Shown: positions 590 through 64,000 of the stretch, one piece after another | How positions within the stretch are numbered: position 1 is the first letter of the stretch | Layout: the number at the start of each line of letters is the position of its first letter | Source of the DNA: Takakia lepidozioides | Lineage: Eukaryota; Plantae; Bryophyta | Reading direction: 5' to 3' | NCBI GenBank assembly: GCA_030704615.1 | Contig: CM060731.1 | Span: forward strand, 44,268,001-44,332,000 | DNA length: 64,000 bases | Made by a program: the position numbers and the translations under genes | The notes under the pieces: generated by a model | What the model was told of the DNA's origin: nothing | The model's database searches: none | Seen by the model: the letters and a program-made list of their open reading frames with translations, nothing else

Positions 590-1030
590 GATAGGGCTGT
601 GAGGGGCTGTGACAGGCTGTTCCCTGTGGCTGTGACAGGCTGTGACACGTTGTGATGGGATGTGAGGGGCTGTGACAGGTTGTGGCAGGCTGTGACAGGC
701 TGTGCCATGAGGCCTGTGGGGCTGTGAGGGGCTGTGAGGGGCTGTGACAGGCTGTGCCCAGTGGCCTGTGGGGCTGTGAGGGGCTGTGAGGGCTGTGACA
801 GGCTGTGGCCTGTGGCCTGTGGGGCTGTGACGGGCTGTGACAGGCTGTGATGGGTTGTGACAGGCTGTGCCTGTGGCCTTTGGGGTTGTGATGGGCTGTG
901 ACAGGCTGTGACCTGTGGGGCTGTGACCCTGTGACCTGTGTAGGGCTGTGACAAGCTGTGGCATGTGTGGGGCTATGACGGCTGTGACCAGTGAGTTGTG
1001 TGGGCCTGTGCTGGTCTGTGGTGGCCCGTG
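590..1030 (+). repeat. Degenerate ~10-bp tandem repeat (GGCTGTGA[C/G]x core) upstream of the retroelement gag
   Basis: Dozens of GGCTGTGACA/GGCTGTGAGG units. The low-complexity ORFs 532..954 and 572..964 are artefacts of this array. Confidence 0.9.
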
Positions 1031-1745
1031 TTGACCTGTGGACGGCCGGTGCTAACTCGTGGAGGCACTGGTGGACTGCCTAAGGACTGGCATGTGGTCT
1101 TGAAGGCCGAATTTTGAAGCTCGTGGAGGGCGGTTTGAGGAGTATCTTCATGATATTCCCATGGTCATGCAAGTGAGGGAAGAGAGGAGAGGAAGAGTGT
1201 TGGGATGAGGGCATGCTAGGGTTAGGCATTGCTTTAGCTTCTCTTCCTCGTAGTTTCCACCCTCTCATTAGGCCAAGACCTTTCTATAGGTGGCGGCAAG
1301 AGTCAGTCCGGGATTGGGCTCGGATGTCCTTGCAGGAGCAACACCGTGGAGTTGTTTTTGGTGTTGGGGAGTTGTCGTTCTGATTTCTTGTGTTTGGATC
1401 CCCTCCATACCTGCATGCTTGATTGTGCGCCATGCTAGTTTTATGTGGGCGCTTGTTTTTATAGGTGATTGGTCCGGATTTGATCACCGGCCAGTCCTAG
1501 AGCATGCTGTCGATGGTGAGGCTGGGGTGATGACCAGCCAGACCATCATTGTTTCTCCTGTGGTGAGGTTGGAGGTGATGACCAGCCAACCATAGGAGTG
1601 CTTGCGGTGGATGCAGGTACAGGTGTAGGCTATGTTAGGAACCTAGTATTCCAAACCATAAGCCGCAACAAGTTCTCTACCCGGTGACCTTGTGGAGAGG
1701 GGGTTAGGGACATGTTCATAACCGGTTGAATGACAGTTTGTCAAC

Positions 1746-4700
1746 ATGGAGGTGCCACTAGTTGCTGGGAACAATGCCGGTTCGAGCATTAGCGATACTA
1801 GTGGGTATACGAGACGAGGTGTGCGGTTTAGGCCACCTTCACCTCCTGTGTCTTCTACGGAATGTTCTAATTCGGATTGTGAATCAGGATGACTTATACC
1901 GGCGGTGCAAGTTGTTTCCTTGCCATTGTTGTGGGACACAATGGAAGAGATGTACGGAGCTATCAAGGGGCCACGAAGGTACTATGGGGCGGTGGGCACC
2001 ATCGAGTTGGATGATTTTATCCAAGAGTTTGATAGTTGGTGTGATTTGCAGCAAATGCGCAATCCACAACTATTTACGCCTTTCATGGCATGGAAGGGGC
2101 TGTTTTAGCACCTTGAGGGGCCGCCTATGGATGATTACCATGAATTCAGGCGGGGGCATGAGGTTGAGATCGAGGAGTGGAGGATGTACTGGTCACCCGA
2201 CTATATCTCCATCACTAGGGGCACTAGAGCCACGAGGGCAGTGGCTACATCTGCCGCTGCACTGGCAGCTTCAGCAAGCAGCAGTGGGACTAGTGGGACT
2301 GGTGGTACAGTAGCTACGACGTCCACCCAAGCCACTACCGCACCAGCACTAGTACCCGTGCCTGCCTTCAACCCAGTTGTGGAGTTCTTCGAAGAGTTGA
2401 GAGGGAACTACCAAGGGGTGAGGACAGAGAAGTTGCGGAGCTTGCAAGAGTTCCAACAGAAGCCGACCGATAGCTTGAGGGAGGCTTTCACTCGCATGAG
2501 GCGCTTGATAAATGTAACCCAAGGGGTTACGGAAGCTCAGGCAGTCCAATTCTGGTATGGGATATTGGACAAGGAGCTGAGGAGAAGGGTGCGGGATGCA
2601 ACTCTCATATAAACGGCCCAACCCACCTTAGCAAATGTGTTTTTGCTGGCAGAGCGGATAGAGCTCAACATGGTGGAGGAACGAGTGGTCATGGTGGGAT
2701 TTGCTAAGGAGACACCACGGGGTAGTGGTGCTCCTAGCCAACCACTACCTCAACGTGCTCAAGGCAATAAGGGGGCTCAGGTGAAGCTCAGGGAAGGGCA
2801 GAGAGGACCTCAGATGCAGGGGTCTCTCCCTTCATTTGCTGGCCAACAACGAGCGGATGTGGTGGCTGGACATGTGGATGACCCCATGTCAAGAAGGATT
2901 GCCCAGAGGGAGGCAAAAGGCCGGCACATGCACAATCTGCACAATTGCAGTGTAGGCATTGTGGCAAGCACGGGCATGGAGAGGCCCAGTGTTATGGTTT
3001 GCATCCTGAGTTGCGCCCAGGCCAGTTCTAAGGGAACAATGGTGGCCGGGGGCGAGGTGGAGCAGCCTAGAGAGGACGAGGTGGCCAGGCACGAGGTGCA
3101 GGCCAAGGGCAAGCTCAACATGGCCAAGAACGCGGAGGTCAGGGTGTTGACCAAGGCATGGCCAACCGGCTTCAGCAGCTAGAGCAGAGGCTCGATGCCA
3201 TGACTACAGCTCAGGTGGTACCGGCTCCAAGGCCGGATGGTCCACCTCCTGCTCCTGAGGGAGGAGATATGAGAGGCATGGGATTCATGTGCGGAGCAGC
3301 ACTACCACTAGTGCAGGTGGAGTCTGCTGTAGCCGTGACTCGAGGAGCAGCACGAGTTCCTGAGCCACGAGGTGCAGAGATGGAGTTGGATCCACAGCGT
3401 GGGGAGGCAAGCCGTCAGGCTAGGCTCCCTCAGTCATTCACATTGGTGGAGATAGTGTCGACGCCATCCATGGCACCTAGTTCTTGCCCAACTGTTACCG
3501 AGGCGGAGGTTACTATGCCATTGGGGAGAGCTACACGGGTAGCAGCACTACCTAGTGTTGCCAAGGCTACGGCAGCTAGTGTGCTGCTGGGAGCGGCCAC
3601 ATCTGTGTGTCAGGCTCCATTGTTCTCGGCTACCATGATTGCGATGCCGGGGGTAAGACCAGCTAAGGTGTTTAGGCTGGTAACTACACTCTATGAGAGT
3701 GGGGAGGTTACTTCATCTTCTGCGGAGATAGTGGGAGGTGTAGTGCTGGAGGGATCCTCAGATTTGAGGGTCAAGACTGCCACGGCGGCGCCATGGCAAG
3801 CTGCAGCTGCCAGGTTGATGGAGCTGCCAGCTAGGCCAGCCAATGCGCGCGCCATGGTGACACCTGGAGTTGTCATGTTAGACAACCAGGATGACATTTT
3901 CTGTTTGAGTGGACCGGCAGGCAAGATGTACCGGCCACTGCGGGTCTTGTTGGACTCGAGAGCTCAGCCATTGATGCTGGGCAGAGCTGCTATTGCAGGC
4001 TTGGGCCTCACAGAGGCGGATATGGAGCCTTGTCCTTTCCAGATACAGACGTCTCTGGGAGGATCGGAGCAGGCTCGGGGCATGACACGGCGTGAGTTGG
4101 CTATCAGACTACGGCTGGATCACCCTACAGATGGCTCAGTGATGCGAGCCAAGGCCATTGTGACAGACGCGGTCTCGTATAATGTCCTGGTTGGTGGGGC
4201 AGTGTTGTACCCCATGGGCTTCACCCTGGATTTTTGGGAGGAGTCAGCTTCCTATAGGCCTGGATGGCAGTCAGGGGAGGGCCGATGTGTGCAGCTCCCT
4301 GTGACATTCATAGGAGGAGTTGCGGTTGCCCAGCGGGGCAAGATGCCGACACTAGCAGCATTCACAGCGGCAGTGAGTTGGCCTGGAAAGTTGCTTGAGG
4401 GCAACGCTCAATCAGAGGATGTGCCACCTCCGAGAGAGCAGGAAGACATGTATGGTATGACGGAGTTGCCTGCCATGGTTGCTCAGACTCCATTGTGGGG
4501 CACGAGCAAGGATTTGCAACGGGTTGCTAATTGACGGGTGCAACAAGCCTGGGTGGAGGCTTTTGTACCATCGGGAGAGGAGGAGAGTGTGGGGATTGCA
4601 CCAGGACCACCTCAGTTGTCTCCATTGGACACCATACCTATTGTGTGGCAATATCCAGATGAAGGCATTTGTCTTCTGGACTTGTTTGGCGGGATCAGCA

Positions 4701-10444: not shown

Positions 10445-11931
10445 ATGGCACAAGGGCCAAAAGCCCGGGTTATCCTCACTCGAGCCACTACTAGAGCTTT
10501 GGAGATGGAGAAGGTGGAAAATTGTGAGGAAACAATGTCCTTCATTGGAGATGCCTCTGAGAGCTTAGTAACTATGGATGCCGCACTTTGGAGCAATCTA
10601 CCTGATCATCTCTTGGATAGAATTTTGGCACGCTTGCCCTTTCCAAGCCTTTTCAGATTCTTCTCCGTTTGCAAGAGCTGGAATGCTATGAAATTCAACC
10701 CCACATTTTTAAACCTTTACATAGACATTCCCACACAGGGACCTTGGTTTTTACTTTTGAGAAATCAGGACTACAGAGAAACATTTACATACAACCATTC
10801 ACTAAATCAATGGCTTCAATTGCTACCCCCCTCTTTTCCTCTAAACCAAATGTTTTTTCCCGTTGCAGCAGCTGGAGGTCTCCTTTGTTTTAGCTCATGT
10901 GCAAATGGGCATACTACTTTGGTGGTGTGTAACCCTCTCACTAAAAGTTGGCGTGAGCTTCCCCCTATGCTTAAGATCCAAACTTATCACATGGCAGGGA
11001 TGTCAGTGGACAAAGTTTCAAGAACTTACAAAATTGTGGTTGTGGGAATCTATGGGATATATGATGTATATTATCCAACAACAGAGGTTTATGATTCTAC
11101 CAACGACTGCTGGCATATAACAGGAGAGATTCCTCGAGGCCCTCTCTTCCCATCACGTCGCACTCTTCTCTCTAACGGAATTTTGTATTCATGGTGTTGT
11201 GACCCCCCTGATGGATTAGTGGCCTACGACCTTCAAGAAGAAGTTTGGAACCAAATTCATGCCCCTATGCGCCACTCTCTAGAGAGCCACACTTTGATTG
11301 AATGCCAAGGATGCATTTATACTGTGGGAGGGTTGCGTGAGAACAGCCTCACTAAGAGTATTTGCATTTGGGAGCTCCAAAGAAATGAGTTGGAATGGAA
11401 AGAGGTAAATGTAATATGTTTTAAAATGATACATCATTGTTTGCATTGAAGTTGTAACCAAACCATATAATTGAATACAAATATTTCATTTGTAAAGTTC
11501 TCCTGAAATTTACATATAGTTCATTTTACTATTTTCATGGATTGTGATCTAGTGTAAACTATAGTATGCTAGACGGAGACATTCTTTTTCTCACAATATC
11601 TTTTACTAACAAAATAACCTATGCATGTACTATTATATACTTTTGCGTCTAATATTATTTCATGCGACATATTGTCTTACGTTAATAGGTGGATCGCATG
11701 CCAGAGATTCTCTGTGAGGAATTTCTGTGTGGGGGAAGGCGGTTTATCTGCATTGGGTCCAATGACCTCGTGTTGTTGATTGTGCGGGGAAGAGATCGGT
11801 TAGTGTTGTTGTATGATTTGACAAAACGTATGTGGCGCAGACTACCTTATTGCCCCTTGACTGACCAAAAATTAAGATATGGACTAATTGATGGCATATC
11901 TTTTGAGCCTCGGTTGGATGCATTTGTATGA
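10445..11931 (+). CDS. F-box/kelch-repeat protein (~400 aa), 2 exons: 10445-11404, 11689-11931
   Basis: F-box WSNLPDHLLDRILARLP...VCKSW and kelch-like segments (AAAGGLLC, VVCNPLTKSWRELP, TEVYDS), C-terminal FEPRLDA. GT at 11405, AG at 11687-11688, phase 0. Confidence 0.93.
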
Positions 11932-20830: not shown

Positions 20831-23101
20831 CCAAGAGTTTACAAATTAGCATAGACATGAAGATGACAAGAAATAGCTCAATCAATAAAAGATAAAGAGT
20901 CCGAGATATAACCTACCTGAAGTTGGTGTACAATTGAATGTGAGGTAATCTTCCGTCTTGGCAGTGTGCATGGAATATGCAGAGTGCCTGGTGACTGGAG
21001 AGATGCATATATTAGGAGTGAAAGCAGTGGCAGCCATGGTTGTAGTGAGGGATATTGGAGTGGATTCAAGAAAGATTTATGAGCATAGAGTATGGTGCTA
21101 GAGCTAGACATCACCAAAACATGTTTACATGAACTCTCTATACCAACCACAATGAAAGCTTGCTTCATGATTAGCTCTATGTAAGAAAGCAAACAATTGC
21201 AACCTCTAGTGCAAGATAGTCGTGACTTGTGAGAGACCGTCTACAAGTTGCACTAACTTCGAACTTCAAAGAAGTAAATATAGAGACCCTAGCTTGAGAT
21301 CAGTAAAATACTAAAACGTTGATTAGGTCTCATAAATGTGTGCCATCGTATTCAGATTATCACTGTGTTTATCATCCATCTATGTGGTCAAATACTTGAA
21401 AAATCATCCAAGTTGCACCCTAATTCCTTCCATTTATTTCTTTCGTTCACCAATGCAACCAAGAACGGTTTTAGGATTTTTCCCATGGGGGCAGAATTAG
21501 AAAATCAGACAGACAGAATTAGACAAATCATTCTACAACTACCAAGACTAAAATGGCAGTGCCCACATCAATCTGCAATTAAAAGAAAGAGTAAAAGTAC
21601 TTGAGCACGGATACAAAATTTGATGCATCATATAATGTAGAGAAAATGTAATCATGATTCATCACAGATGGAAGATAGTTGACAAGATTATAAAATGTCT
21701 TGCTAGCTTTTATTGTCATTTTTTATTCACAATCATAGATACAGAAATAGAAACAACAAATCATGGGGTTTTGTGTTTGAGCGATTGTCAATTCATCAAA
21801 TCTCTTCAACTATAGAAAGATGCTCTTTGCAGAGAAGAAAAGATTCAAATGGAAAACACATTGAGAAAGTATATGGAAATGAGAGCACATGGATGTGGGT
21901 GTTGTTTGAGGCATGAGAATGGATATGAGAACGTTTTTCAAGGCTTGGTGTCAATACTTTATAGCACAATTGCTCCAATTGATCAAAGTATTTAGAATCA
22001 AAGTGCAAATACAGTTTCTACCAGGTTTTTCTTCAAAAACTCATTGGTACCCTTTCATATTTGACTGTATTGTAATCTCTTTGACTTTATTAGACTAGAA
22101 TTCATCAATTTTTCATTCACGCAAGTATAAACGTGAAAGGTTATATGTGTTTCAATTCACACTTACCATGTCTACATTCATACTAAACCAATTCTCTAGC
22201 TGTAGCGCCCTTTCTCTCTCCTAAATCAAATAACTTAAGCTTATTGTAGATTTTTCAGGAATCGCGCCTTCATGGCTTCTCAAGGTTTTTTTCCTTATTT
22301 TAATGTTGTTTCTAGAGCCTCCATCCCCTGTTTAAAGAAAAAAAAGCTAAGTTGAAATTAAGCCTTAAAGCATTTAGATCTGTCAGCTAAGTATCCAGAG
22401 ATCCCTGGTTTGCTAAGATTTTTGGTCAAACCTGCAAGTTGCAATTTGAAGAGTAGTTGAATTTTTCTTTCATTTCCCCCCCCCCACCTTGAGCAATGTA
22501 TAATGTTGGAACGAGCTAGTCGGTTTGAAGAATCAGTTAGGTATGTTTTCTTCCTCCGTTTCCTTTGACCCAAGAGGTTAGCAAAACTCTATACCCCACT
22601 TCTGAATTTGAAAACCCTATATCTATTAATATACATTTTGTCACATATGTCTTATATATATATATATATACATATATATAGCATTTATGACACCAGCTCT
22701 AGGGGGTTTATATGTGTTGTTATTTCCTTCATAACAATATGGTGATGGTTTGTGCAGGAGGTGACTCATAAAAAAGCTCAGGTCTGTACTGTGATATAGG
22801 GGTGTTCTAAACCTTGGCTTTGTTGGGTAAGAAGAAGATGATGAAGGAATGTGGCCATCTACTACCAACTATGTATTGTGCTTTTCTGGAAGATGATGCA
22901 GTCTGTTGCTGTATACATGTGTATTTTGGGGTCATCTCATTGATCAAGGTTGGGCAATGATCACATCTGACCTGGGAGCTCTTTTGAGGAGAAGGTCAAC
23001 TTGTTTGAGCAATTACTCGCAGAAAGAATCAGAGACTACGGTCACTTGAGCACGGTTGGGTTGTGCTCAAGAGATGGTGGAAAGATGTTGGAGCGTCAGC
23101 C

Positions 23102-25308
23102 ATGGTAGGGACTGTGCTAGTGTTGGTTGTCGCGTTTTGGATGAGCGTCCCAGCCGTCCTGGCTCGGACGGGACGGCGACTGCAGACGCAAAGCCAAGCC
23201 TCCGACATGCAAGTACTACTAGAAATGGCACAGTTGGTGAGCGTAGATCCGTATAATGCACTGGGATCCTGGGACGGCACTCAGTCTAGCGCGTGCCACT
23301 GGAATGGCGTCAAGTGCAATTCTAAAAGGAGAGTGACGGAGCTTCGTCTAAAGGACAAGCAGATGGAGGGCGTTCTATCACCCGGCCTGGGCAATCTTGA
23401 ATATTTGAAATTTTTAGAACTTTCAAATAACCATTTGAAGGGAGGCATTCCCCCCTCCCTTGGTGGCTGTACATCACTTGTTGGCTTGCAACTTGGAAGC
23501 AACCAACTAACAGGCAATGTGCCAGCAGTTCTGTTCAATCAAACTCAGCTCAACACACTGGTCCTGGCAAATAATATGCTAACAGGGACAATCCCAGCGA
23601 CTATCCTTGGCTGTACAACCCTGAGCTTACTTAGCCTTGGCAACAACTTCCTAACCGGGACCATTCCCGAACTAGGTCCCCTCAGTTTACTAGAATATGT
23701 GGATTTGAGCAAGAACGGGTTCTCAGGAAGCATACCTAGCTTTGTGGGCCTTACCCACCTGAGGACTCTAAGTTTGTCCTCAAATGGTTTGACAGGTCAG
23801 ATACCCATCTCTCTTCAAGAACTACCAAAGCTCAACGAGGTCGGCCTCTCTGACAATCAGCTAACAGGACCTATTCCAGACACGAAATTCTTCCAGCATC
23901 TTCCATTATCGACATATGCGGGTAATGTTGGGCTCTGTGGGCCCATACTGAAGAAGGATTGCTCTGAAATTACCTCTGCCACGGGTGGGAACAGTACTGT
24001 ACCAAGGTTGCCTGGAACCGTTGCCGCGAAATCAGGCGAGAAGGTTCCACTGCCCTCAACAAACTCCAAGCTCTCAGAGATCAGCATCATCATACTATCC
24101 TGTGTCGTGGGTGGGGCGGGGCTGGTGATCAGCCTCCTTATTGTTTGGTGGTGTTATTCCGGCCGCGACCGCTCAAGTGGCCATGAATTTGGGAATGTGA
24201 CAAATGCGGATGTTGCCCCTTTGGCAGGCCAAGGGAGCGGATTCTCTGAAGCTGATCTTCAGAAGGCAACTGATGGGTTTAGTAAAGTTAATGTGATTGG
24301 AATTGGGAGATCTAGTACTGTCTTCAGGGGGATCTTGCCTAGCGGTCAAATCGTTGCGGTAAAAAGATTAAATTCAAAGAACAATAACTTGGATTTACAG
24401 CACAACTTCGTTGCTGAGTGTCGTGTGTTGAGCCGAATCACGAAACACCCTGGCTTGGTACGAGTGCTAGATTTTTGCGCCAGCTCTAACCTTTTGGCCA
24501 TAATTTTGGAGTTTATGCCTAATGGCACCCTGGAAAAGAACTTGTATGAGCGGAAGATGAGCTGGGAGGATCGCCTCATCCTTGCCATCGGTGTGGCAAA
24601 CGGGCTAGTGTATCTGCATCATGAGTGCTCGGAGCACCGAGTGTACTGTGATTTGAAGCCCTCACACATTCTTGTTGACGTAAGTGGCAAGGCGAACATC
24701 ACTGATCTTGGCATACCCCGATTTGCAACAGTACGGAACGTCGTTGGCCTTCCTAGTGCTGTCTTGCATGGCACAGCTGGCTACTCTGCTCCAGGTGAAA
24801 ACACTGGGGTTCAACCACCGTGCTTTGCCTTACAATTCTAGTTGGAAAGCCTAGGTACAATAATTCTGTGAAATGTACACGTGTCTTCATGCATACCTCA
24901 CCACATGCATTGCACATTGCATGCTCGAGCTAACAATCCGACATGCCTATGGGTTGGTGGATTTGATGAGCAGAATATGCACACACAACGGGAGCCACAC
25001 CAAAGGGAGATGTGTACAGCTTTGGCATCATAATTCTCGAGTTGCTCGTCAGGAAGAAGGCCAAGGACATTCTGGTGAGTGAAGGTATAAGCCTCGCACA
25101 GTGGGTGAAGCAAGCGTTGGCTAAACCGCAGCTTCTTGTGCAAGTATTTGATGTGGAACTGCTGCAGACTATGGGTATTGACAATCACCTGCTAGAGCTG
25201 ATGGATGTGGCCATGCTTTGTACACACGAGGTGCCTGAGAGACGGCCGTCCATGCCGGACGTGCTCAAGGTGCTCCTGAAAATCCAAGGACATCGACGGG
25301 CGCGGTGA
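23102..25308 (+). CDS. LRR receptor-like kinase, non-RD type; exons 23102-24794, 24974-25308
   Basis: Signal peptide, LRRNT (WDGTQSSACHWNGVKC), about 8 plant LRRs, GNVGLCG cap, TM (IIILSCVVGGAGLVISLLIVWW) and kinase (VAVK, YCDLKPSH, DLG, GTAGYSAP|EY, GDVYSFG, RPSM). The intron falls at the conserved APE position. Confidence 0.92.
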
Positions 25309-54733: not shown

Positions 54734-56330
54734 ACTAGGGAACGGGCCGCGTTGGCCGATTCTGCCCTGTAAGCGGCCTTTGGGCGAGCCCTATGGCCGC
54801 GCACAGGGCAGAATCGGCCAACGCGGCCCGTTCACTGGCGTTAAAAGCAGGTGTGGCGGATTCTCGCCGCTACGTGGCGCAATATGATTGAGGTTCGATT
54901 ATCCCATATCGATTGCCCAGATTCAGAGCCCTGGAGAAGATATAAAGGGGGCGAGGCTCAAAGGAAGGAGGGAGGGTTGATGGCTGATGACATTGGGCTC
55001 AGTGGTAGGTTAGCCATCCTCTGTGTGTAATGGGCCATCCCTGCTGACTGCCCTTGGTTGCCGATGCGGCCTGAGAATTAGGGCAATGGGGTGTGTTTGG
55101 CCGATTTTGCCCTCTAAGCGGTCTAAGCGGCCTTCCGTTAGGGCGAGCCCTATGGCCGCACATAGGGCAAGGTCGGCCAATCGCGGCCCGTTCACTGGCA
55201 TTAAAAGCAGGTGTGGTGGATTCTCGCCGCTATGTGGCGCAATATGATTGAGGTTTGATTATCCCATATCGATTGCCCAGATTCAGAGGAAGGAGGGAGG
55301 GTTGATGGCTGATGACATTGGGCTCGGTGGTAGGATTGCCATCCTCTGTGTGTAATCGGCCATCCCTGCCGACTGCCCTTGGTTGCCGATGCGGCCTGAG
55401 AATTAGGCCGAAAAAGTGGAAGAATCTGCCACACCTGCTTCTAACGTACTAGAGAATGGGTTGTGTTTGGCCGATTTTGCCCTCTAAGCGGCCTTCCGTC
55501 AGGGCGAGCCCTATGGCCGCACATAGGGCAATCGCGGCCCGTTCACTAGCATTAAAAGCAGGTCTGGCGGATTCTCGCCGCTATGTGGTGCAATATGATT
55601 GAGGTTTGATTATCCCATATCGATTGCCCAGATTCAGAGCCCCGGAGAGGATATAAACGGGGCAAGCCTCAGGGGAAGGCGGGCGGGTTGATGGCCGATA
55701 GACATGGGCCTCGGGTCTGTTGTCCTCTATGCGCAATCGGCCATCCCTGCCGATTCTGCCCTAAGTGGCCGATTAGGGAACAAGAGATAGTCGCCCTAAT
55801 GATTGTCATAAAGTAACAATCAGGAAAGGTCTGCAGCTCATCAATCCATTCCAAAGTGATCTTGGTGGGGTTCTGCACAAAGGCTGGAAAATCAACATGG
55901 TAATCAACGGATAGTGTATGCACAAACCAGTAAGCATACTGGACAATGAGAGAGGGAAGATACTTTTGTCAGGTCAAGACAAGGACAAGACCCCTAGGGT
56001 TGTTGTCAGGAAGAATAAGAATAATGAGACATATCAGCCACTTTTCAATGGCACCATCCATCAATCACCAAGCTGGAAAATCCAGAATTACCTCCATGCC
56101 CAATAATGTGTTCATGCCAATAATCTTCATAACCCAGAGAGTAAGTAAAAATACTGATTGACCACCAGTCATAATCAGGATATACATTCAGAGGTCTGGG
56201 TGGGATGGTGGGCACTTTGCCACACTTTGCCCTTAATGTGTTGCACGTCAGTTGGTCACACATTTTTTACAACGAAGGCTTGAAAATCAGGCCGAAAAAG
56301 TGGCAGAATCCGCCACACCTACTTTTAATG
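54734..56330 (-). mobile_element. Head-to-tail Helitron2/Helentron-like non-autonomous elements (54734-55446, 55447-56330) with ~360-bp internal repeats
   Basis: CTAG terminus; perfect 31-bp inverted repeat 54740-54770 / 54803-54833; asymmetric inverted repeat TTAAAAGCAGGTGTGGCGGATTCT (~54841) vs AGAATCCGCCACACCTACTTTTAA (~56305, also ~55421). Confidence 0.55.
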
Positions 56331-56479: not shown

Positions 56480-57251
56480 CCCCAAAAGGACGACGCGACC
56501 CGCGTCGGATTACTTGCCACGCTCCCATTCCCATGGATGATAGTGGATGGAAGTGAACCTTGAAAATGAATTGTAGATGTCAGATAGGAGCACTCGTGGG
56601 AATTTACAGCGCCAAAAAATCATAAAAGTTGTGCTCCCTAGAATTTTGCAAAGTGCCAAGGTTAGAGCACCATTGACCTGCCTGCGTGGCAGTCAAATGG
56701 GCAATGTTCAAGATAACATCTAGGGCTGAAAATTTATCATAATGCCAAAAACTTTGGACAAGGCACCATGAAATGTTACTGTGCACTTACTTACCAGAGG
56801 AATTGGAAAAAAAATGTCACCTCATGGGTGTATTTGGGATAGAAGCCAAAACAAGATAATTTGCCCCCCAAGATTTCACATACAAAGCAGCCCCCCAATA
56901 TTTTTGGCATTTTGGTCTGAGATTCTGGGAGATAACCTGTTGGTTGCCCCTTATCCGGATTCTGGAGCCATTTCTTCAAGAAAAAATGTAAAATCACCAA
57001 ACTTGCATGGTCAATTTTTCCTCTCTTTTTTTGTTCATGGTTTCAACTTGGCCAATTTTCTTTTGTTATAATCTACTAAATGGAACGGTCAAAAATGCTA
57101 CAATTTTTTGAGGACCTTCATGTAGTAGGTAGGGATGAAATGGAACGGTCCATCCAGCTGGATGTAAGGGGGTAGGAAGTTACAGCTCAGCAATGGAGGG
57201 TATTGCCCACTTTTTGGGAAAACTCCCAAAAGTTAGCTAGTCCTTTAGGGG
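56480..57251. mobile_element. piggyBac-like MITE (772 bp) with TTAA target-site duplication
   Basis: TTAA(56476-79)-CCCCAAAAGGAC ... GTCCTTTAGGGG-TTAA(57252-55), an 11/12 TIR. The joined flanks match the uninterrupted sequence around TTAA 54317-54320. Confidence 0.85.
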
Positions 57252-58028
57252 TTAACACAAACACAAAATTAGTTTATCAGAAATAGAGTGATGCTCTCTC
57301 ACAAAAAAATAGAACACCACGGGATTGCAGCAGTGTTGTGCGGGTATATTGTTTTAGCCATACCCTCCGGGTCCGGGCAAGAAGAAATACTATATTTCCA
57401 AATTATATTTACCCTCCGGGTATGGGTATATTACTGCTGGTAGAATCTGAAGGGTATAAATAAATAATAAAACTCCTCATTTATACCCTGAGGTATAAAT
57501 AAATGTCGGGTATAGTTAAATAGGTATATTTCTATTGTTTATCTAGTTTATAATATATATACTCCACCTTTTTTCCTTTTTTTCTTTTTTTTGTTTTTTT
57601 GTTTTTCCGTTCGTGATATGATAGCCAGGCCATACAGGGTGTGGGCTCCGTTGGGTGGTGCGTCTGGGAAATGATTTGAGTTGAACCAGCCAGTGGCCCC
57701 TCATTGGCCGGGTTTAAACACATGCCATAATATGAGCGGCCAAAATCGTTTTGTATTTGTATTTGTATTTGTTGGCATTGGGACTTCATCTGGTTGCATG
57801 TGCCAAGTGAGGTGACGAATCTCACTTGGGATGCGAAAAGGCTCATCTCCACGTGAGGCTCAGGAAGACTCGTCTTCTTCTAGTTGAGTGTAGAATAAAA
57901 CTAAGATCAATCCTAAAAGAAAAGATCAATGAGTTCTAAGGTTCGTTCGCTGGGGAAAGCACTATACGACTAATTCATAATGATGCCAGACTATTCTATC
58001 TCTCTCTACTCCTTCTTTGAAACAATTT

Positions 58029-58331
58029 CTACCAACAGTCATCTTCATCTAACACGATCATCATTCTTCCAGATTCATGAATATTCCCTCCATCTTCTAT
58101 TAACTCTGCTCCATCAGCTAAAATCAAATACCATTGCTCCACTATATTCTTCCTCCAATAATCTCTCTGATACAAAGTCAACAGCTCTCGATACCATTCT
58201 TTACTGACTAACCATAGATTGATTATCTCCTTGTCGCTACATTGTAACATTTTAAGGATATCTAGAGACAAACTATGAGGCAGTCCAATAATCAATTCTA
58301 CATGATATACTAGTTGTTCTCCTTTACACAT
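58029..58331 (-). CDS. Small F-box-domain protein (100 aa) inside the LTR-like module
   Basis: ELIIGLPHSLSLDILKML....INLWLVSKEWY matches the F-box pattern L..LP.....IL..L......L..VSK.W. The ORF is open with an ATG start. Confidence 0.6.
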   Translation of the reverse strand: MCKGEQLVYHVELIIGLPHSLSLDILKMLQCSDKEIINLWLVSKEWYRELLTLYQRDYWRKNIVEQWYLILADGAELIEDGGNIHESGRMMIVLDEDDCW

Positions 58332-58344
58332 CGTCAGTGCTCAT

Positions 58345-58655
58345 TCTTCACCACCAATTCTGTTTCTCAAGTCGTTCCAGGGATTTCCCCTCACCAAAGT
58401 TATGATTCCATTCTCTCATAAGTTCAGGATAGCCTTTAAATGGTCTATACCACTTCTGCAACCAACTATGCTTCCAATAACAACTCCGGTATAGAATGGA
58501 TATCTCCCTATACCATCATTTATTGACCAATTGCAATAAGAATACTCTTTATCACTACAACAAAGCTTCTGAAAGATTGTTATTGATAAATGATCTGGTA
58601 ATCCAGAGATCAATTCCGACACTTCCTTTATTCCTTCATCATTCCTCTCTGCCAT
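58345..58655 (-). pseudogene. Second, frameshifted F-box mini-ORF paralog
   Basis: ELISGLPDHLSITIFQKLCCSDKE, then after a frameshift FLLQLVNK*WYREISILYRSCYWKHSWLQKWY. This aligns with INLWLVSKEWYRELLTLYQRDYWRKNIVEQWY of the neighbouring ORF. Confidence 0.6.
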
Positions 58656-59467
58656 GCAAATGATTTTAATTCACTGTTTCACTCCTATCATGAACCCAAT
58701 TGGAAACTCTCTCTGTCTTCGTTTCCTTAATCTGCTCCTTCTGCGCTTTGCATATCTCTCTATCGATATTTCTCTTGATAGACCAGAAACTGATTCTCAC
58801 ATCGAATTCTTTATCTGTTTCATTTATGCGTATTCTCATCATCTTATATAGTCATGGTTCTACAGTTCTTACCCACAGAAACACATTCTCATTCCATCAC
58901 TCCATTCTTCACACGTACACAAAGTGAATTGCACTTCCTTTTTCTTCTCCTTCTCATTCATAAATCACAACACTGCAAGAACGCAGTACTAAATCTACCA
59001 TTGCAGAATAACTCTATAGTATACCTCTTACTCACTCTACTCCCGGTCACGGCTCTCTAGCTCAATTGACACTTTCTTCTTCCCATTAACGCTTTATATA
59101 GCAGGGCACTTCAATAACTGTAATAACCGCTCAAGCTTCTTCATCCATCCTTTACAATTATTCATCCATTTCTTCTATCATTCAGTCCAAGATAGACTAT
59201 CGACTGTATACAAGATATCGAAGAACATTGCCCTATCGCAGCAATATCGAAGGTATCGTAGGCTATATCGATAAGAAAAATATTAAAAATTTCTGAAAAT
59301 TATCATTAAGTCAGAAATTCCTATTATTCTACAATATAGCCCCACTCCCAATTGTGTAGCGCCCTCGCAAACACTATCTTCTGCAACTAATTTCTTGGCC
59401 GCTTCTCCCGCCTCCCCTCTAACTCATGTGACCGACGATGGTCACACTCATCCCCTTCCTTCTGGAA

Positions 59468-61231
59468 CTACTTGAACGTCATATAGGGGTGGTATCGCGA
59501 AGGCCCCCAATCATCATACATAGCATAATCTGCACACTGGAGAAATCCAGTCAAGCACATCAATTCTAACACCCGCATTTCCCTTGTCGGGTGATGCAAT
59601 AGCTTGGCTACTATCCCGAATTCATGTCCCCCCAACATAGGCCTGTTAACATCAACAACAACATGGTAGTAATGACACCACTTAGCCAAAACCCCGCAAA
59701 AAATGACTGCCATAAAACACAAAGGATCGAAATGATTCGCATGCAGCCCCTGAAAGGATTTGTACGCTGTCTCGCAATAGTCCGCACTGCTGAACTCTCC
59801 CGGAATTAACGGCCAATTGTAAGGTAAGGACTTCAAGTACTCATTCTCGTGCCATTGACCACGACGCGCACACATGCATACATCAAATCAGCCTATAATA
59901 TTCCGTGGCCACGGTCCACTGATTGGTGTCAATCAAGTGCCCATCTTCAAAATCGATTCTCCCGTTGCAGTGTGGCCATAGTCTTGCCCCATCCATAACA
60001 ATACTTCCCAACATGGCAGCACCTTATCGTCAGAATCCGCATAGACCTTCTCCGTTCTGCCCAAAAACTCTGAGTACTCCCAGTTAGTAGGAAAGTGACA
60101 TCGTTCGAATATCGCAAAGCCCACCTGCGAAACTTGTGTAGCACTGGGTTGATTGATTTACAAATCCTCCATCCATTTGGCCGTCAATAACTCTGGTCAA
60201 GTTTTTGCTTCCATCCACTTGCTTATCCTTTGCTGAATTGCAATCTGCGTCCAGACATAGGGGGATCCATGTAAACACTCCGGAACCAGCCGATACCTAC
60301 GATGAGCTCTCTCCAACATCGTATGAAACTGGGCCTCGTCCAACACTTGAGCTACCAGAGGTTGCACCATATCCAGGTACCTTGGCAACAGTTTGTCATC
60401 TAGCCTTGGAATAGCAAAAAGAAGACCACAAGCATGTACTCGATTCCAGTGTCTATCGTGGAGGTAAGATTGTCAAAATGCCTCCAGTCTATCTTCCAAC
60501 TGTTTATAATACAAAAAACAGCGACTGGCAGGATCTCCAACAATAAACAAAAACTGTTCTGGATGGGCGACTGCCACGTCTCCCCTCACCACCATCTCCA
60601 CGGCCACATTCTCCATGTGATAGTTGCACAGGTCTTCCCACTCTGCCTCCAAATCAATCGGCTCCTCTCCACCATTGAAAAGCAATTGTAAAATAGTACT
60701 ATCATACAAGTATCCTTGACCAAGGCTCTGAGCATAACATACCTCATGCCATCCCTGCAAAACGTTGAGTCCAACGATTTATGCAGGTCTTATCGTCTCT
60801 CTGAACTATTGTAACTCGGACATTTGTGCCTTCATGGTCTGTTCCATCACATCCATCTCCCCTTGCTGCTCAGCGCGATAAGAATCAAATTCCTGCTGCA
60901 AAACTACATATCGTTCCTCAGGATTGACTATGGCAGTAGGTTGTTTCCCCATCTCTGCTACTTGCTTGGTAATCTCTACCAACTGACTCTCCAATTCACT
61001 GACACGAGCCTCTTTTGACCTCATCTGCTCTGCCTGTGTAGCAATGATTGCATCATTTTCAACAATAGCCTGCTGCTGACAAGCCTCTTTCATCTTCCAC
61101 TGATCCTGGAATTTGTGGAGTTTTGTCGAGCGGCTTTTATTCACCCATCCATTCGCTATCCGAGGTGGAAACTCCAAGATAGAAGAGTTGGATATCTCTA
61201 AGCACTCAGCCCGCTCAGAACAATCAATCAT
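59468..61231 (-). pseudogene. ORF-B: ~588-codon unknown protein (N-terminal coiled coil plus aromatic-rich globular region) broken by in-frame stops
   Basis: ORFs starting at 61231, 60760, 60388, 60124 and 59875 are all in one frame, ending just before a PPT-like tract. Confidence 0.7.
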
Positions 61232-61747
61232 GACGTGCAGCTAGTGAATCATGGTTGTGCTTCCTATTTGTATTCCTTCCTGCCTTCATGTTATCAATTT
61301 ACCTTACCGTGTATACTGAAGCATCAGATTGCTTCAGTATCTATTAAGTTCCAGTTAATCATGCATTCATTCCACAGCTTCTCTCGTGTCTCTCTACACA
61401 ATATGTTTGTATCGATTCAGTATTGGATTAAGATTAATCATGTATCATGCCTATGCCATGGTGTCTCTATTCTATCCTACTGTATAATTCTACAACTTGC
61501 ATGAACTACGCCTCATTCAAGTCATCATCTCCTCTTCATTGTTTTCCGCTCTCCGTTACGTATCTTCTTCTCTTCTACAAGTCGCCCTCCTCCAGAAGTG
61601 ATCCCCTTCTCGTTGCCGCTCTCCTAATCTACCCGCAAGCTGTTCTAACCACCTAACTAACTAATCGTCACCCCTGAAGTAACACGTTCCCTCTACAGAT
61701 GTCGTTCTCTCATAGTCGTTCCCTGTCAATGATAACTGTTCCCCATG

Positions 61748-61848
61748 TACTGTGACAGGCTGTGTCAAGCTGTGCCGAGCTGTGACTGACTGTGTAAAGC
61801 TGTGTCGGGCTGTGACTGGCTGTGCGAAGCTGTGGCGGGCTGTGTAAC
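61748..61848 (+). repeat. 10-bp GCTGTG-core tandem repeat
   Basis: CTGTGACAGGCTGTGTCAAGCTGTGCCGAGCTGTGACTGA..., about 10 units, resembling the array at 590-1030. Confidence 0.85.
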
Positions 61849-62003
61849 CCCCCTAAAGCCTGCTGCTGCCACCCCTAAAGCTCCTGTTGGTTTCATTCTA
61901 CGCAAAAATTAAGGGTACCCCATAGAACCCGTAAAAGCGTCTAAGTCCCAATCAGCCCTCTAACATTACCCCTCCCCCTCTCAAAAAGTCGTGTCCTCAC
62001 GGT

Positions 62004-64000
62004 TTACTGTTTGGGATGAGCAAACATTTGTGAGCGAGCACCCTTCTGTCGGTGAGAGTCGCATGAAGGACTCCGTGTGTGAGCCAGAGTCCTATCACTG
62101 GCGGATGGAGATGATTGAGCACTACCTGGAAATGTCTGACCCTCCTTTGGCTGATAACGAGGTAATCTCTCGGGCATAGGAGATCCTCGTCGTTTCTTCT
62201 CTGCCATCTGAAGTGCATCTGAAGAAACAGTAGTATCAGAATCCTCGTCCCCCCTTAGGTGTTTTAACGGCCAAACTTTAAGTGGAATCCTATGTGGCAT
62301 GCAATGCGGTCCCACCATGTCTGGAAGTTTAAACTGTATAACTTGTTGTAAGCGCTTGCAAGCAAAATTAGTGAACACCCTGAACTCCTTATCCGTATAG
62401 GTGAGAGGTATGCCAATGACTTTGGAATAGTGTAAGTATTTCCAGGCTTCATGTCCCTTAAAGAGAATATCCTCAAGGCCGAATTTCTGTGTTGTCAAAT
62501 TGTTCCAAGCCGAATTAAACCATGAACGAAGTTGGGAATCCTTCTGCATCATAACTTTTGCATCATATAGGTACATATGAGGTGGCACTGAAGGTAAGAC
62601 CCAATGATCCCCACTGGAATAACTCAGAAATCGTGATTGCATCCTCTGCTGCTCAATGTGACAACGTGCAAGCACCATAGTATAATCCATTATTGAACAA
62701 TATTGTTGCTAAGTAAGTCCCCAGAGTATTGGCTTGTCCCATGACAATACTAGATACCTCCTTGGTCTTGGTATAAATGTACCCATGTACAACCTGGAAG
62801 GCAATTAATTCTTTCAGCATGGTACCTGCCTCAAACCAGTACCTCGCAAAATGATGATCCTCAATGGGTCGATTGTTCGGAAGAACCTTAGTCCGAGTTG
62901 CCACCGGCAACCAAATGCGCATGATCTGATAGTAATGTGCCAACGACTGCGGAGAACTAAATTCCTTCCAAGCCAAATCCAGCACAATGGGAATTTGGTT
63001 GAAGGGCATAATCATAGTCCGACTGTACTCCCGTGCAGCAGGGGTCCTAGGTGGGTTAAAAGCAGCATCCCCCCATACCTCAGGATGTGGTGTGGTTGTA
63101 GTAACAACAGGGTCAGCTACCTGCACAGCCACTTTCTGTGGTATTGGTACCACTGGCCCTTCTATCACTGGCATCTCCAGCGAAGAAGACTGAAAAATTA
63201 GAGTCAAGTAGCCATCAGCTGCTCCTCAGGAACAAAGACTCTCTTGTCAATATTTGAACTCAGGTCATCCACTTGAGTCTGCAGGCCTTCCACATCCTCA
63301 TGTAGCTCCGCTATCCTACTATAGACATTATCTATAGTAATTGTGGAAATGTTCTGCACCTGCAATCAGAGCTCATTCATCTCGCCCTGGGTGAGCTTCC
63401 GTGGTGTTTTGCCTTCTACCGGTCCTTGTGCTAACCAGACCTGCATAAGGTGGTTATCCACCGAGTCCTGTGTGGCACCCCTGAGAGTCTGCTCCTCCGT
63501 GAGTCTGTACACATCTAACTGCTACTGTAAAGCCTCCATGTGCTTTGCATGAGGTTCAACCAGGCCCGCATAGGCAGCAGCCAGATTATTGGCTTCCTTC
63601 CAAGCCTTGTTAGCCACAGAGAGTTCATTTCTATTGACCATGACTGATTGTTGCAACTCCAGGATGTACCTCTCCTGGTCAACCTCAACCTGTCTGTATT
63701 GTTTGAAAGTATTCTCATTGCGACAGATTGTATTCTTCATATCAACAATGAGTTTTACTTGCTCTATTATCTTAGCTTCTGCCCTCATACATCTCTCCCC
63801 TTGTCTGTTAACTTCTAATGCAGTTTGCTCTAGAGTAGTTGTGAGTGTAGCACATTGTATGGTCATCTTCTCATGTACTGCCTCCAACTCTGTATGTAGT
63901 ACGTTCACTTCTTGCAACTTGCCCTCATGCTTCACCTGCAATTGGTATAACTGTTGCTTATATGTTTCATGCAACTGGTCCTGCTCGAGGCCTACTTCAA
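62004..64000 (-). pseudogene. ORF-A: long unknown protein (coiled coil, Pro-rich linker, globular region) with stops and frameshifts; 5' end outside the window
   Basis: Collinear fragments 63522..63974, 62653..63207 and 62004..62690. The stop lies ~20 nt before the PPT. Confidence 0.65.

Follow-up and report, generated by a model that had tools for sequence, protein, structure and literature searches.

Small F-box-like proteins are encoded by plant viruses; polerovirus P0 and nanovirus Clink have been shown to bind SKP1, and the action of P0 leads to the loss of AGO1. A protein-coding gene within the LTR of a retroelement is known from mouse mammary tumour virus (MMTV), in which the superantigen gene sag lies in the LTR and overlaps U3. 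The VANC proteins of the VANDAL21 DNA transposons of Arabidopsis act against silencing through DNA hypomethylation. Little is understood of the accessory genes of plant LTR retrotransposons; the ones on record belong to the internal region, where additional ORFs occur in the sense or antisense orientation (PMC7264820; for the Retand lineage, PMC11963269).

Here we describe two tandem F-box-like mini-genes found in a stretch of 64,000 nucleotides from the bryophyte Takakia lepidozioides, referred to below as the window. The best explanation of the locus, to which we would give roughly an even chance, is that it represents the 3' LTR of one decayed copy from a bryophyte LTR-retrotransposon family of very high abundance, and that this LTR carries tandem, old, paralogous F-box mini-genes that are accessory to the element. 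Like P0 and Clink, the products of the mini-genes would be small, would belong to a selfish element, and would have a minimal F-box but lack a classical substrate domain; the viral proteins, however, come from RNA or ssDNA viruses, no sequence relationship between them and the mini-genes was found, and the comparison is one of analogy only. With sag the mini-genes share their position within a retroelement LTR, but sag encodes an unrelated protein of an animal retrovirus and is a single gene with no tandem duplication. VANC is a precedent for a transposon-encoded factor directed against host silencing, although it is an unrelated protein of a DNA transposon and works by DNA hypomethylation rather than through the ubiquitin system. 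The additional ORFs of plant LTR retrotransposons are, as the mini-genes would be, accessory coding sequences beyond gag-pol that are kept across many copies of a family (PMC7264820; PMC11963269), whereas the mini-genes lie inside the terminal repeat and not in the internal region. The review text on these ORFs contains no mention of F-box, ubiquitin or genes within the LTR (PMC7264820; PMC11963269). In the papers that full-text searches on plant LTR-retrotransposon ORFs and gene capture brought up, we found no F-box gene inside an LTR, and no description of the layout seen here, a tandem F-box-like gene pair within one LTR.

Two tandem open reading frames and their paralogy

Both mini-genes are located on the minus strand. 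The downstream one, fb2 (58331-58029), is intact and runs for 100 codons from ATG to TAG; its putative F-box occupies residues 13-48 and is followed by a W/Y-rich tail predicted to be helical. The upstream one, fb1 (58655-58348), is broken and was delimited by reading its frames and by its paralogy to fb2. Its open frame comprises 79 codons (58655-58416), and the start of its F-box is readable from 58655 to about 58546. Two lesions were detected: the loss of one base near 58545/58546 and an in-frame TGA at 58518-58516, immediately ahead of the WYRE motif. Another frame (58515-58351, with a stop at 58350-58348) contains the W/Y-rich tail and the second half of the fb1 F-box, in which L-V-N-K is followed by W-Y-R-E. 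When the whole window was searched with fb2 by tblastn, fb1 was the sole match, in two pieces (62.5% identity over 24 aa and 30% over 60 aa, joint E 7.6e-10). This joint match, together with the reading of the frames, demonstrates that the window contains an old tandem pair of paralogues, 36% identical to each other, of which fb2 is intact and fb1 carries both lesions. The preliminary description had quoted an F-box motif from each ORF, and both motifs were located on the minus strand where it had placed them. It had also presented the pair as two paralogous ORFs of about 100 codons; the paralogy stands and the length is correct for fb2, but fb1 is broken and its open frame is shorter.

The start of fb2 lies 17 nt after the stop of fb1. 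As an ORF situated 17 nt behind an ORF of 100 codons, fb2 would be poorly translated from one common mRNA, and it would therefore need its own transcript start or some reinitiation. Between the second candidate TATA box (see below) and fb1, the segment 58746-58796 (minus strand) weakly resembles the start of fb1, a similarity that may reflect a relic third unit or chance. As a third decayed F-box unit this segment (58796-58746) was rejected, since it gave E 0.059 in a tiny search and overlaps another weak match in a different frame.

Resemblance of the mini-genes to F-box proteins

The F-box likeness of the mini-genes is weak but consistent. In comparison with the F-box domain entries of Pfam (PF00646 and PF12937), fb2 matched F-box-like with E 0.0033 (17.6 bits, below the gathering cut-off of 24.3) and F-box with E 0.0073 (16.6 bits, below the gathering cut-off of 20.5), in both cases over residues 16-48, while the 79-aa open part of fb1 gave no F-box match in the Pfam scan. 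Language-model features of fb2 placed an F-box cluster second in rank with a score of 0.93, and other F-box clusters scored 0.88. A full HMMER search of 1.84 billion representatives with fb2 returned two matches only, both of them artefactual concatemers. One consisted of a repeated true F-box unit aligned to fb2 residues 14-48; the other, made of P450-like repeats, was taken as chance. No single-domain homologue of fb2 was found at E 0.001 in the large protein libraries by word-index search or HMMER. The word-index protein search with fb2 returned no match, a look-up of its exact product found no record, and a metagenome scan for further copies gave no match.

We also used profiles. A three-row alignment of fb2 and the two fb1 pieces (profile A1) was compared with solved structures, and its best match was the F-box of Cdc4 (E 0.062), in register over residues 12-73; the F-box protein Dia2 was also listed. 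A PDB search with the single fb2 sequence gave a match at E 0.15 only, which was judged to be chance. In a test fixed beforehand, A1 was aligned by hhalign with a profile of the F-box columns of 28 bryophyte and other plant F-box/kelch proteins, and the alignment had P 0.0019, with the pattern LP..L..IL ... V-S/C-K-x-W in register. Its score of 20.3 was reached by none of 300 column shuffles (mean 10.0, sd 2.2, maximum 19.9), and the reversed alignment scored 8.8. The core F-box motif (L-P, a hydrophobic heptad and V-S/C-K-x-W) is thus present in register, and fb1 contains the same motifs across its two frames. An AlphaFold2 model built from the three-row alignment was helical, with a mean pLDDT of 45.9, which is too uncertain for a fold search.

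These results bear on the possibility that the resemblance is accidental and that the mini-genes are frames left open by chance where the repeat is conserved but non-coding. All database matches were below formal significance and the structure model is of low confidence, as this explanation would predict; four libraries, however, point independently to an F-box at the same residues, no shuffled profile reached the observed score, and the two paralogues share the motif set despite their divergence and differ least at second codon positions (see below). We consider a chance resemblance very improbable, and from the sequence comparisons an F-box origin of the mini-genes appears likely. The F-box signatures named in the preliminary description are therefore retained as an F-box-like character that recurs in all libraries at the same residues and in the profile test, but that stays below the Pfam gathering cut-offs.

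Cellular F-box proteins such as yeast Cdc4 and plant F-box/kelch proteins have, like the mini-genes, the pattern LP..L..IL ... V-S/C-K-x-W in register, followed by a W-containing helix. In contrast to these proteins, the mini-genes have only about 100 residues and no WD40, kelch or LRR target-binding domain, fall below the Pfam cut-offs, and are borne by a repeat instead of forming a single-copy host gene. The window itself contains an intronless host F-box/kelch gene at 10445-11449 (plus strand), through which the 28 proteins of the comparison profile were collected. This gene has clear Pfam matches, and among its named relatives the nearest come from Sphagnum (78%) and from liverworts (about 68%). 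A separate ORF of 592 codons at 23063-24841 (plus strand) encodes leucine-rich repeats and a protein kinase domain, and represents a receptor-like kinase or an exon of one.

Anatomy and copy number of the surrounding repeat

For the copy number, contigs from four public DNA runs (X1-X4), all from one sample of the same species, were aligned to positions 57401-61400. Each run gave 758-3,686 contigs on this region at 80-100% identity, with all identity classes populated and with changes that were mostly transitions. Such a spread of identities, together with the transitions, is expected of an old, methylated repeat family. The stretch is part of a dispersed multi-copy family with a sharp boundary; the preliminary description had left the choice between a repeat and single-copy host-gene debris to a check of copy number, and the high number of contigs rules out the latter.

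The proposed 3' LTR (57677..59450, minus strand, 1,774 nt) begins with TGAGT (59450-59446) and ends with ACTCA (57681-57677), which form a 5-nt terminal inverted repeat. Directly ahead of its TG there is a polypurine tract of 13 purines (59451..59463, minus strand), located four bases beyond the stop codon (59470-59468) that closes the last upstream ORF. Two candidate TATA boxes were read by eye on the minus strand, TATATAAA at 59093..59100 and TATATAAG at 58843..58850, the second of which precedes the fb1 start codon by about 190 nt. The opposite end is marked by a public contig that stops precisely at 57676 and by a roughly tenfold step up in contig depth at 57669. The terminal ~230 nt of the LTR (57677..57908, minus strand) are common to a more abundant repeat variant that is different further upstream: contig depth is higher in bins 57669-57936, loose ends occur at 57705, 57831 and 57888, and one error-free contig spans 57676-57908 and then diverges. 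The preliminary description had placed the ORFs in an LTR-like module downstream of a TATA-like box and a PPT-TG junction. Box and junction are both present, and the LTR-type anatomy, that is the polypurine tract, the TGAGT...ACTCA ends and the sharp boundary at 57676, fits an LTR. A solo-LTR reading was rejected because the five flanking bases differ (GGGGA vs AATCA) and the polypurine tract adjoins the start, and the feature was read as a 3' LTR. No second copy of the LTR, and hence no partner LTR, was detected within the window. No primer-binding site, gag or pol was seen in the window either; the element would have its 5' side past position 64000. An Rfam search of 57000-64000 gave no match. 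A few kb from the end of the LTR, at 54816-55699, units of about 350 nt that are 71-95% identical to one another are repeated in tandem.

The upstream part of the same repeat (59468..61240, minus strand) contains two ORFs, a coiled-coil ORF of 144 codons (61240-60809) and a frame-broken ORF without family assignment (60778-59468). Contigs bridge this part and the F-box part across the joints 59374-59481 and 59380-59453. The upstream ORFs had no usable match in Pfam, the Atlas or the word search, and the five longest ORF pieces between 59468 and 64000 contained no Pfam family and no gag or pol. The upstream modules 64000-61950 and 61950-59380 showed no mutual similarity in tblastx at E 0.01.

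The same region is the source of another explanation, in which the mini-genes are present in the stretch but there is no 1.8-kb LTR, and they belong either to the tail of a longer LTR that starts from a junction near 61966 or to the internal or 3' region of some other repeat. A second purine tract followed by TG at ~61985-61966, the contigs that join the region of the upstream ORFs to that of the F-boxes, the lack of a pol domain in the 4.5 kb upstream and the single copy within the window are all in agreement with it. On the other hand, the first purine tract follows a stop codon at a distance of four bases and adjoins the TG on its other side, the two ends (TGAGT and ACTCA) correspond, and the boundary at 57676/57677 is backed by a contig end; moreover, a long internal region between pol and the 3' LTR occurs in the Retand lineage of plant Gypsy elements (PMC11963269). 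We regard this explanation as unlikely, and the 1,774-nt 3' LTR as the reading to be preferred.

Several other features were observed upstream of the LTR. The second purine-TG junction on the minus strand may begin another LTR or a nested element. Just upstream of it, 62004-63225 (minus strand) contains a 190-codon and a 234-codon ORF that overlap in different frames and probably represent one broken gene of about 420 codons; they had no Pfam family, and the word search found no homologue. Downstream of the junction, 61750-61844 contains CACAGC-like units that are 74-77% identical to positions 607-960 of the window. In the segment 61019-61400 contig depth was hundreds of times above that of neighbouring bins, with a summed word depth of up to ~1.27 million (X2). 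The segment has variable flanks from 61124 and a perfect hairpin with an 11-bp stem near 61310-61340, and it resembles a short repeat in its own right, of extreme abundance, lying over the start of the coiled-coil ORF. It had no Rfam match, and its overall fold was not unusual (z -1.6).

Coding constraint and a possible role for the mini-genes

The contigs of the family were compared with the two mini-genes. The base absent from fb1 near 58545 is carried by 4,703 of the 5,232 units of contig depth in X1 and by 70 of 80 in X3, and by a minority in X2 and X4. Since most of the depth in X1 and X3 has the extra base, the loss belongs to this copy or to its subfamily. Among the 12 indels and 5 larger deletions listed inside the LTR, only this missing base falls within an ORF. 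The ORFs make up about one third of the LTR, and their avoidance by the listed length changes has a rough P of 0.01-0.05, depending on how clustered sites are counted; as a sign of coding constraint it is suggestive only. Between fb1 and fb2, differences were found at 46/90, 31/90 and 53/90 of the first, second and third codon positions, respectively (chi-square ~11, 2 df), in an alignment made at the protein level, which somewhat favours a low second-position difference. Silent sites are saturated (pS 0.77 vs pN 0.42). Taken from the sequences, these patterns are hints of coding constraint in the family. At the three places listed where fb2 departs from the family majority (I15 for T, L26 for F and H85 for Y), the change alters the amino acid, and the F expected at position 26 is the usual F-box residue, present also in fb1. 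The broken fb1 and the amino-acid-altering changes of fb2 indicate that this copy is decaying.

The same data are relevant to whether the ORFs are captured parts (for instance first exons) of host F-box genes that travel as passive cargo and whose coding-like divergence predates their capture. Host gene pieces are captured by LTR retrotransposons (PMC7264820), amplification alone yields a high copy number, this copy decays freely, and among public RNA runs none was found to contain the stretch. What argues against passive cargo is that both units have the same short architecture with their own start and stop, are only 36% identical and have saturated silent sites, which implies a long persistence as open frames, and that the length changes listed for the family avoid the ORFs. 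Furthermore, no longer, host-like relative was found in the protein libraries searched. An origin from the host F-box/kelch gene of the same window was rejected, as fb2 has no BLASTP similarity to it. We consider passive cargo possible but doubtful.

If the mini-genes are accessory genes of the element, each would encode an F-box and a short W/Y-rich helical tail without a substrate-binding domain, and in this copy the upstream gene would be dead and the downstream one open yet drifted from the family majority. Transcription would start from a TATA promoter inside the LTR; with the promoter in that position, solo LTRs would also transcribe the mini-genes. The products would be expected to dock on SKP1 through the F-box and, having no target-binding domain, would most likely either occupy SKP1 as decoys or work through the tail as minimal adaptors, to the benefit of the element. 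An anti-silencing role may be one possibility among several. A more far-reaching version of this proposal is that the lineage has kept and repeatedly duplicated F-box-only genes in its LTR, so that each element or solo LTR is an expression unit for SKP1-plugging proteins that disable or redirect SCF ligases in favour of the element, for instance by weakening silencing; as a whole, we think it improbable.

Each element would carry two copies of any gene placed inside its LTR, and such genes would persist in solo LTRs; in this way a genome could hold very many small promoter-plus-gene units. If their products bind SKP1, the mini-genes would parallel, in a transposon, the F-box proteins with which plant viruses counter the defences of their hosts. 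If they are passive debris, the case still shows how a genome can become seeded with F-box fragments.
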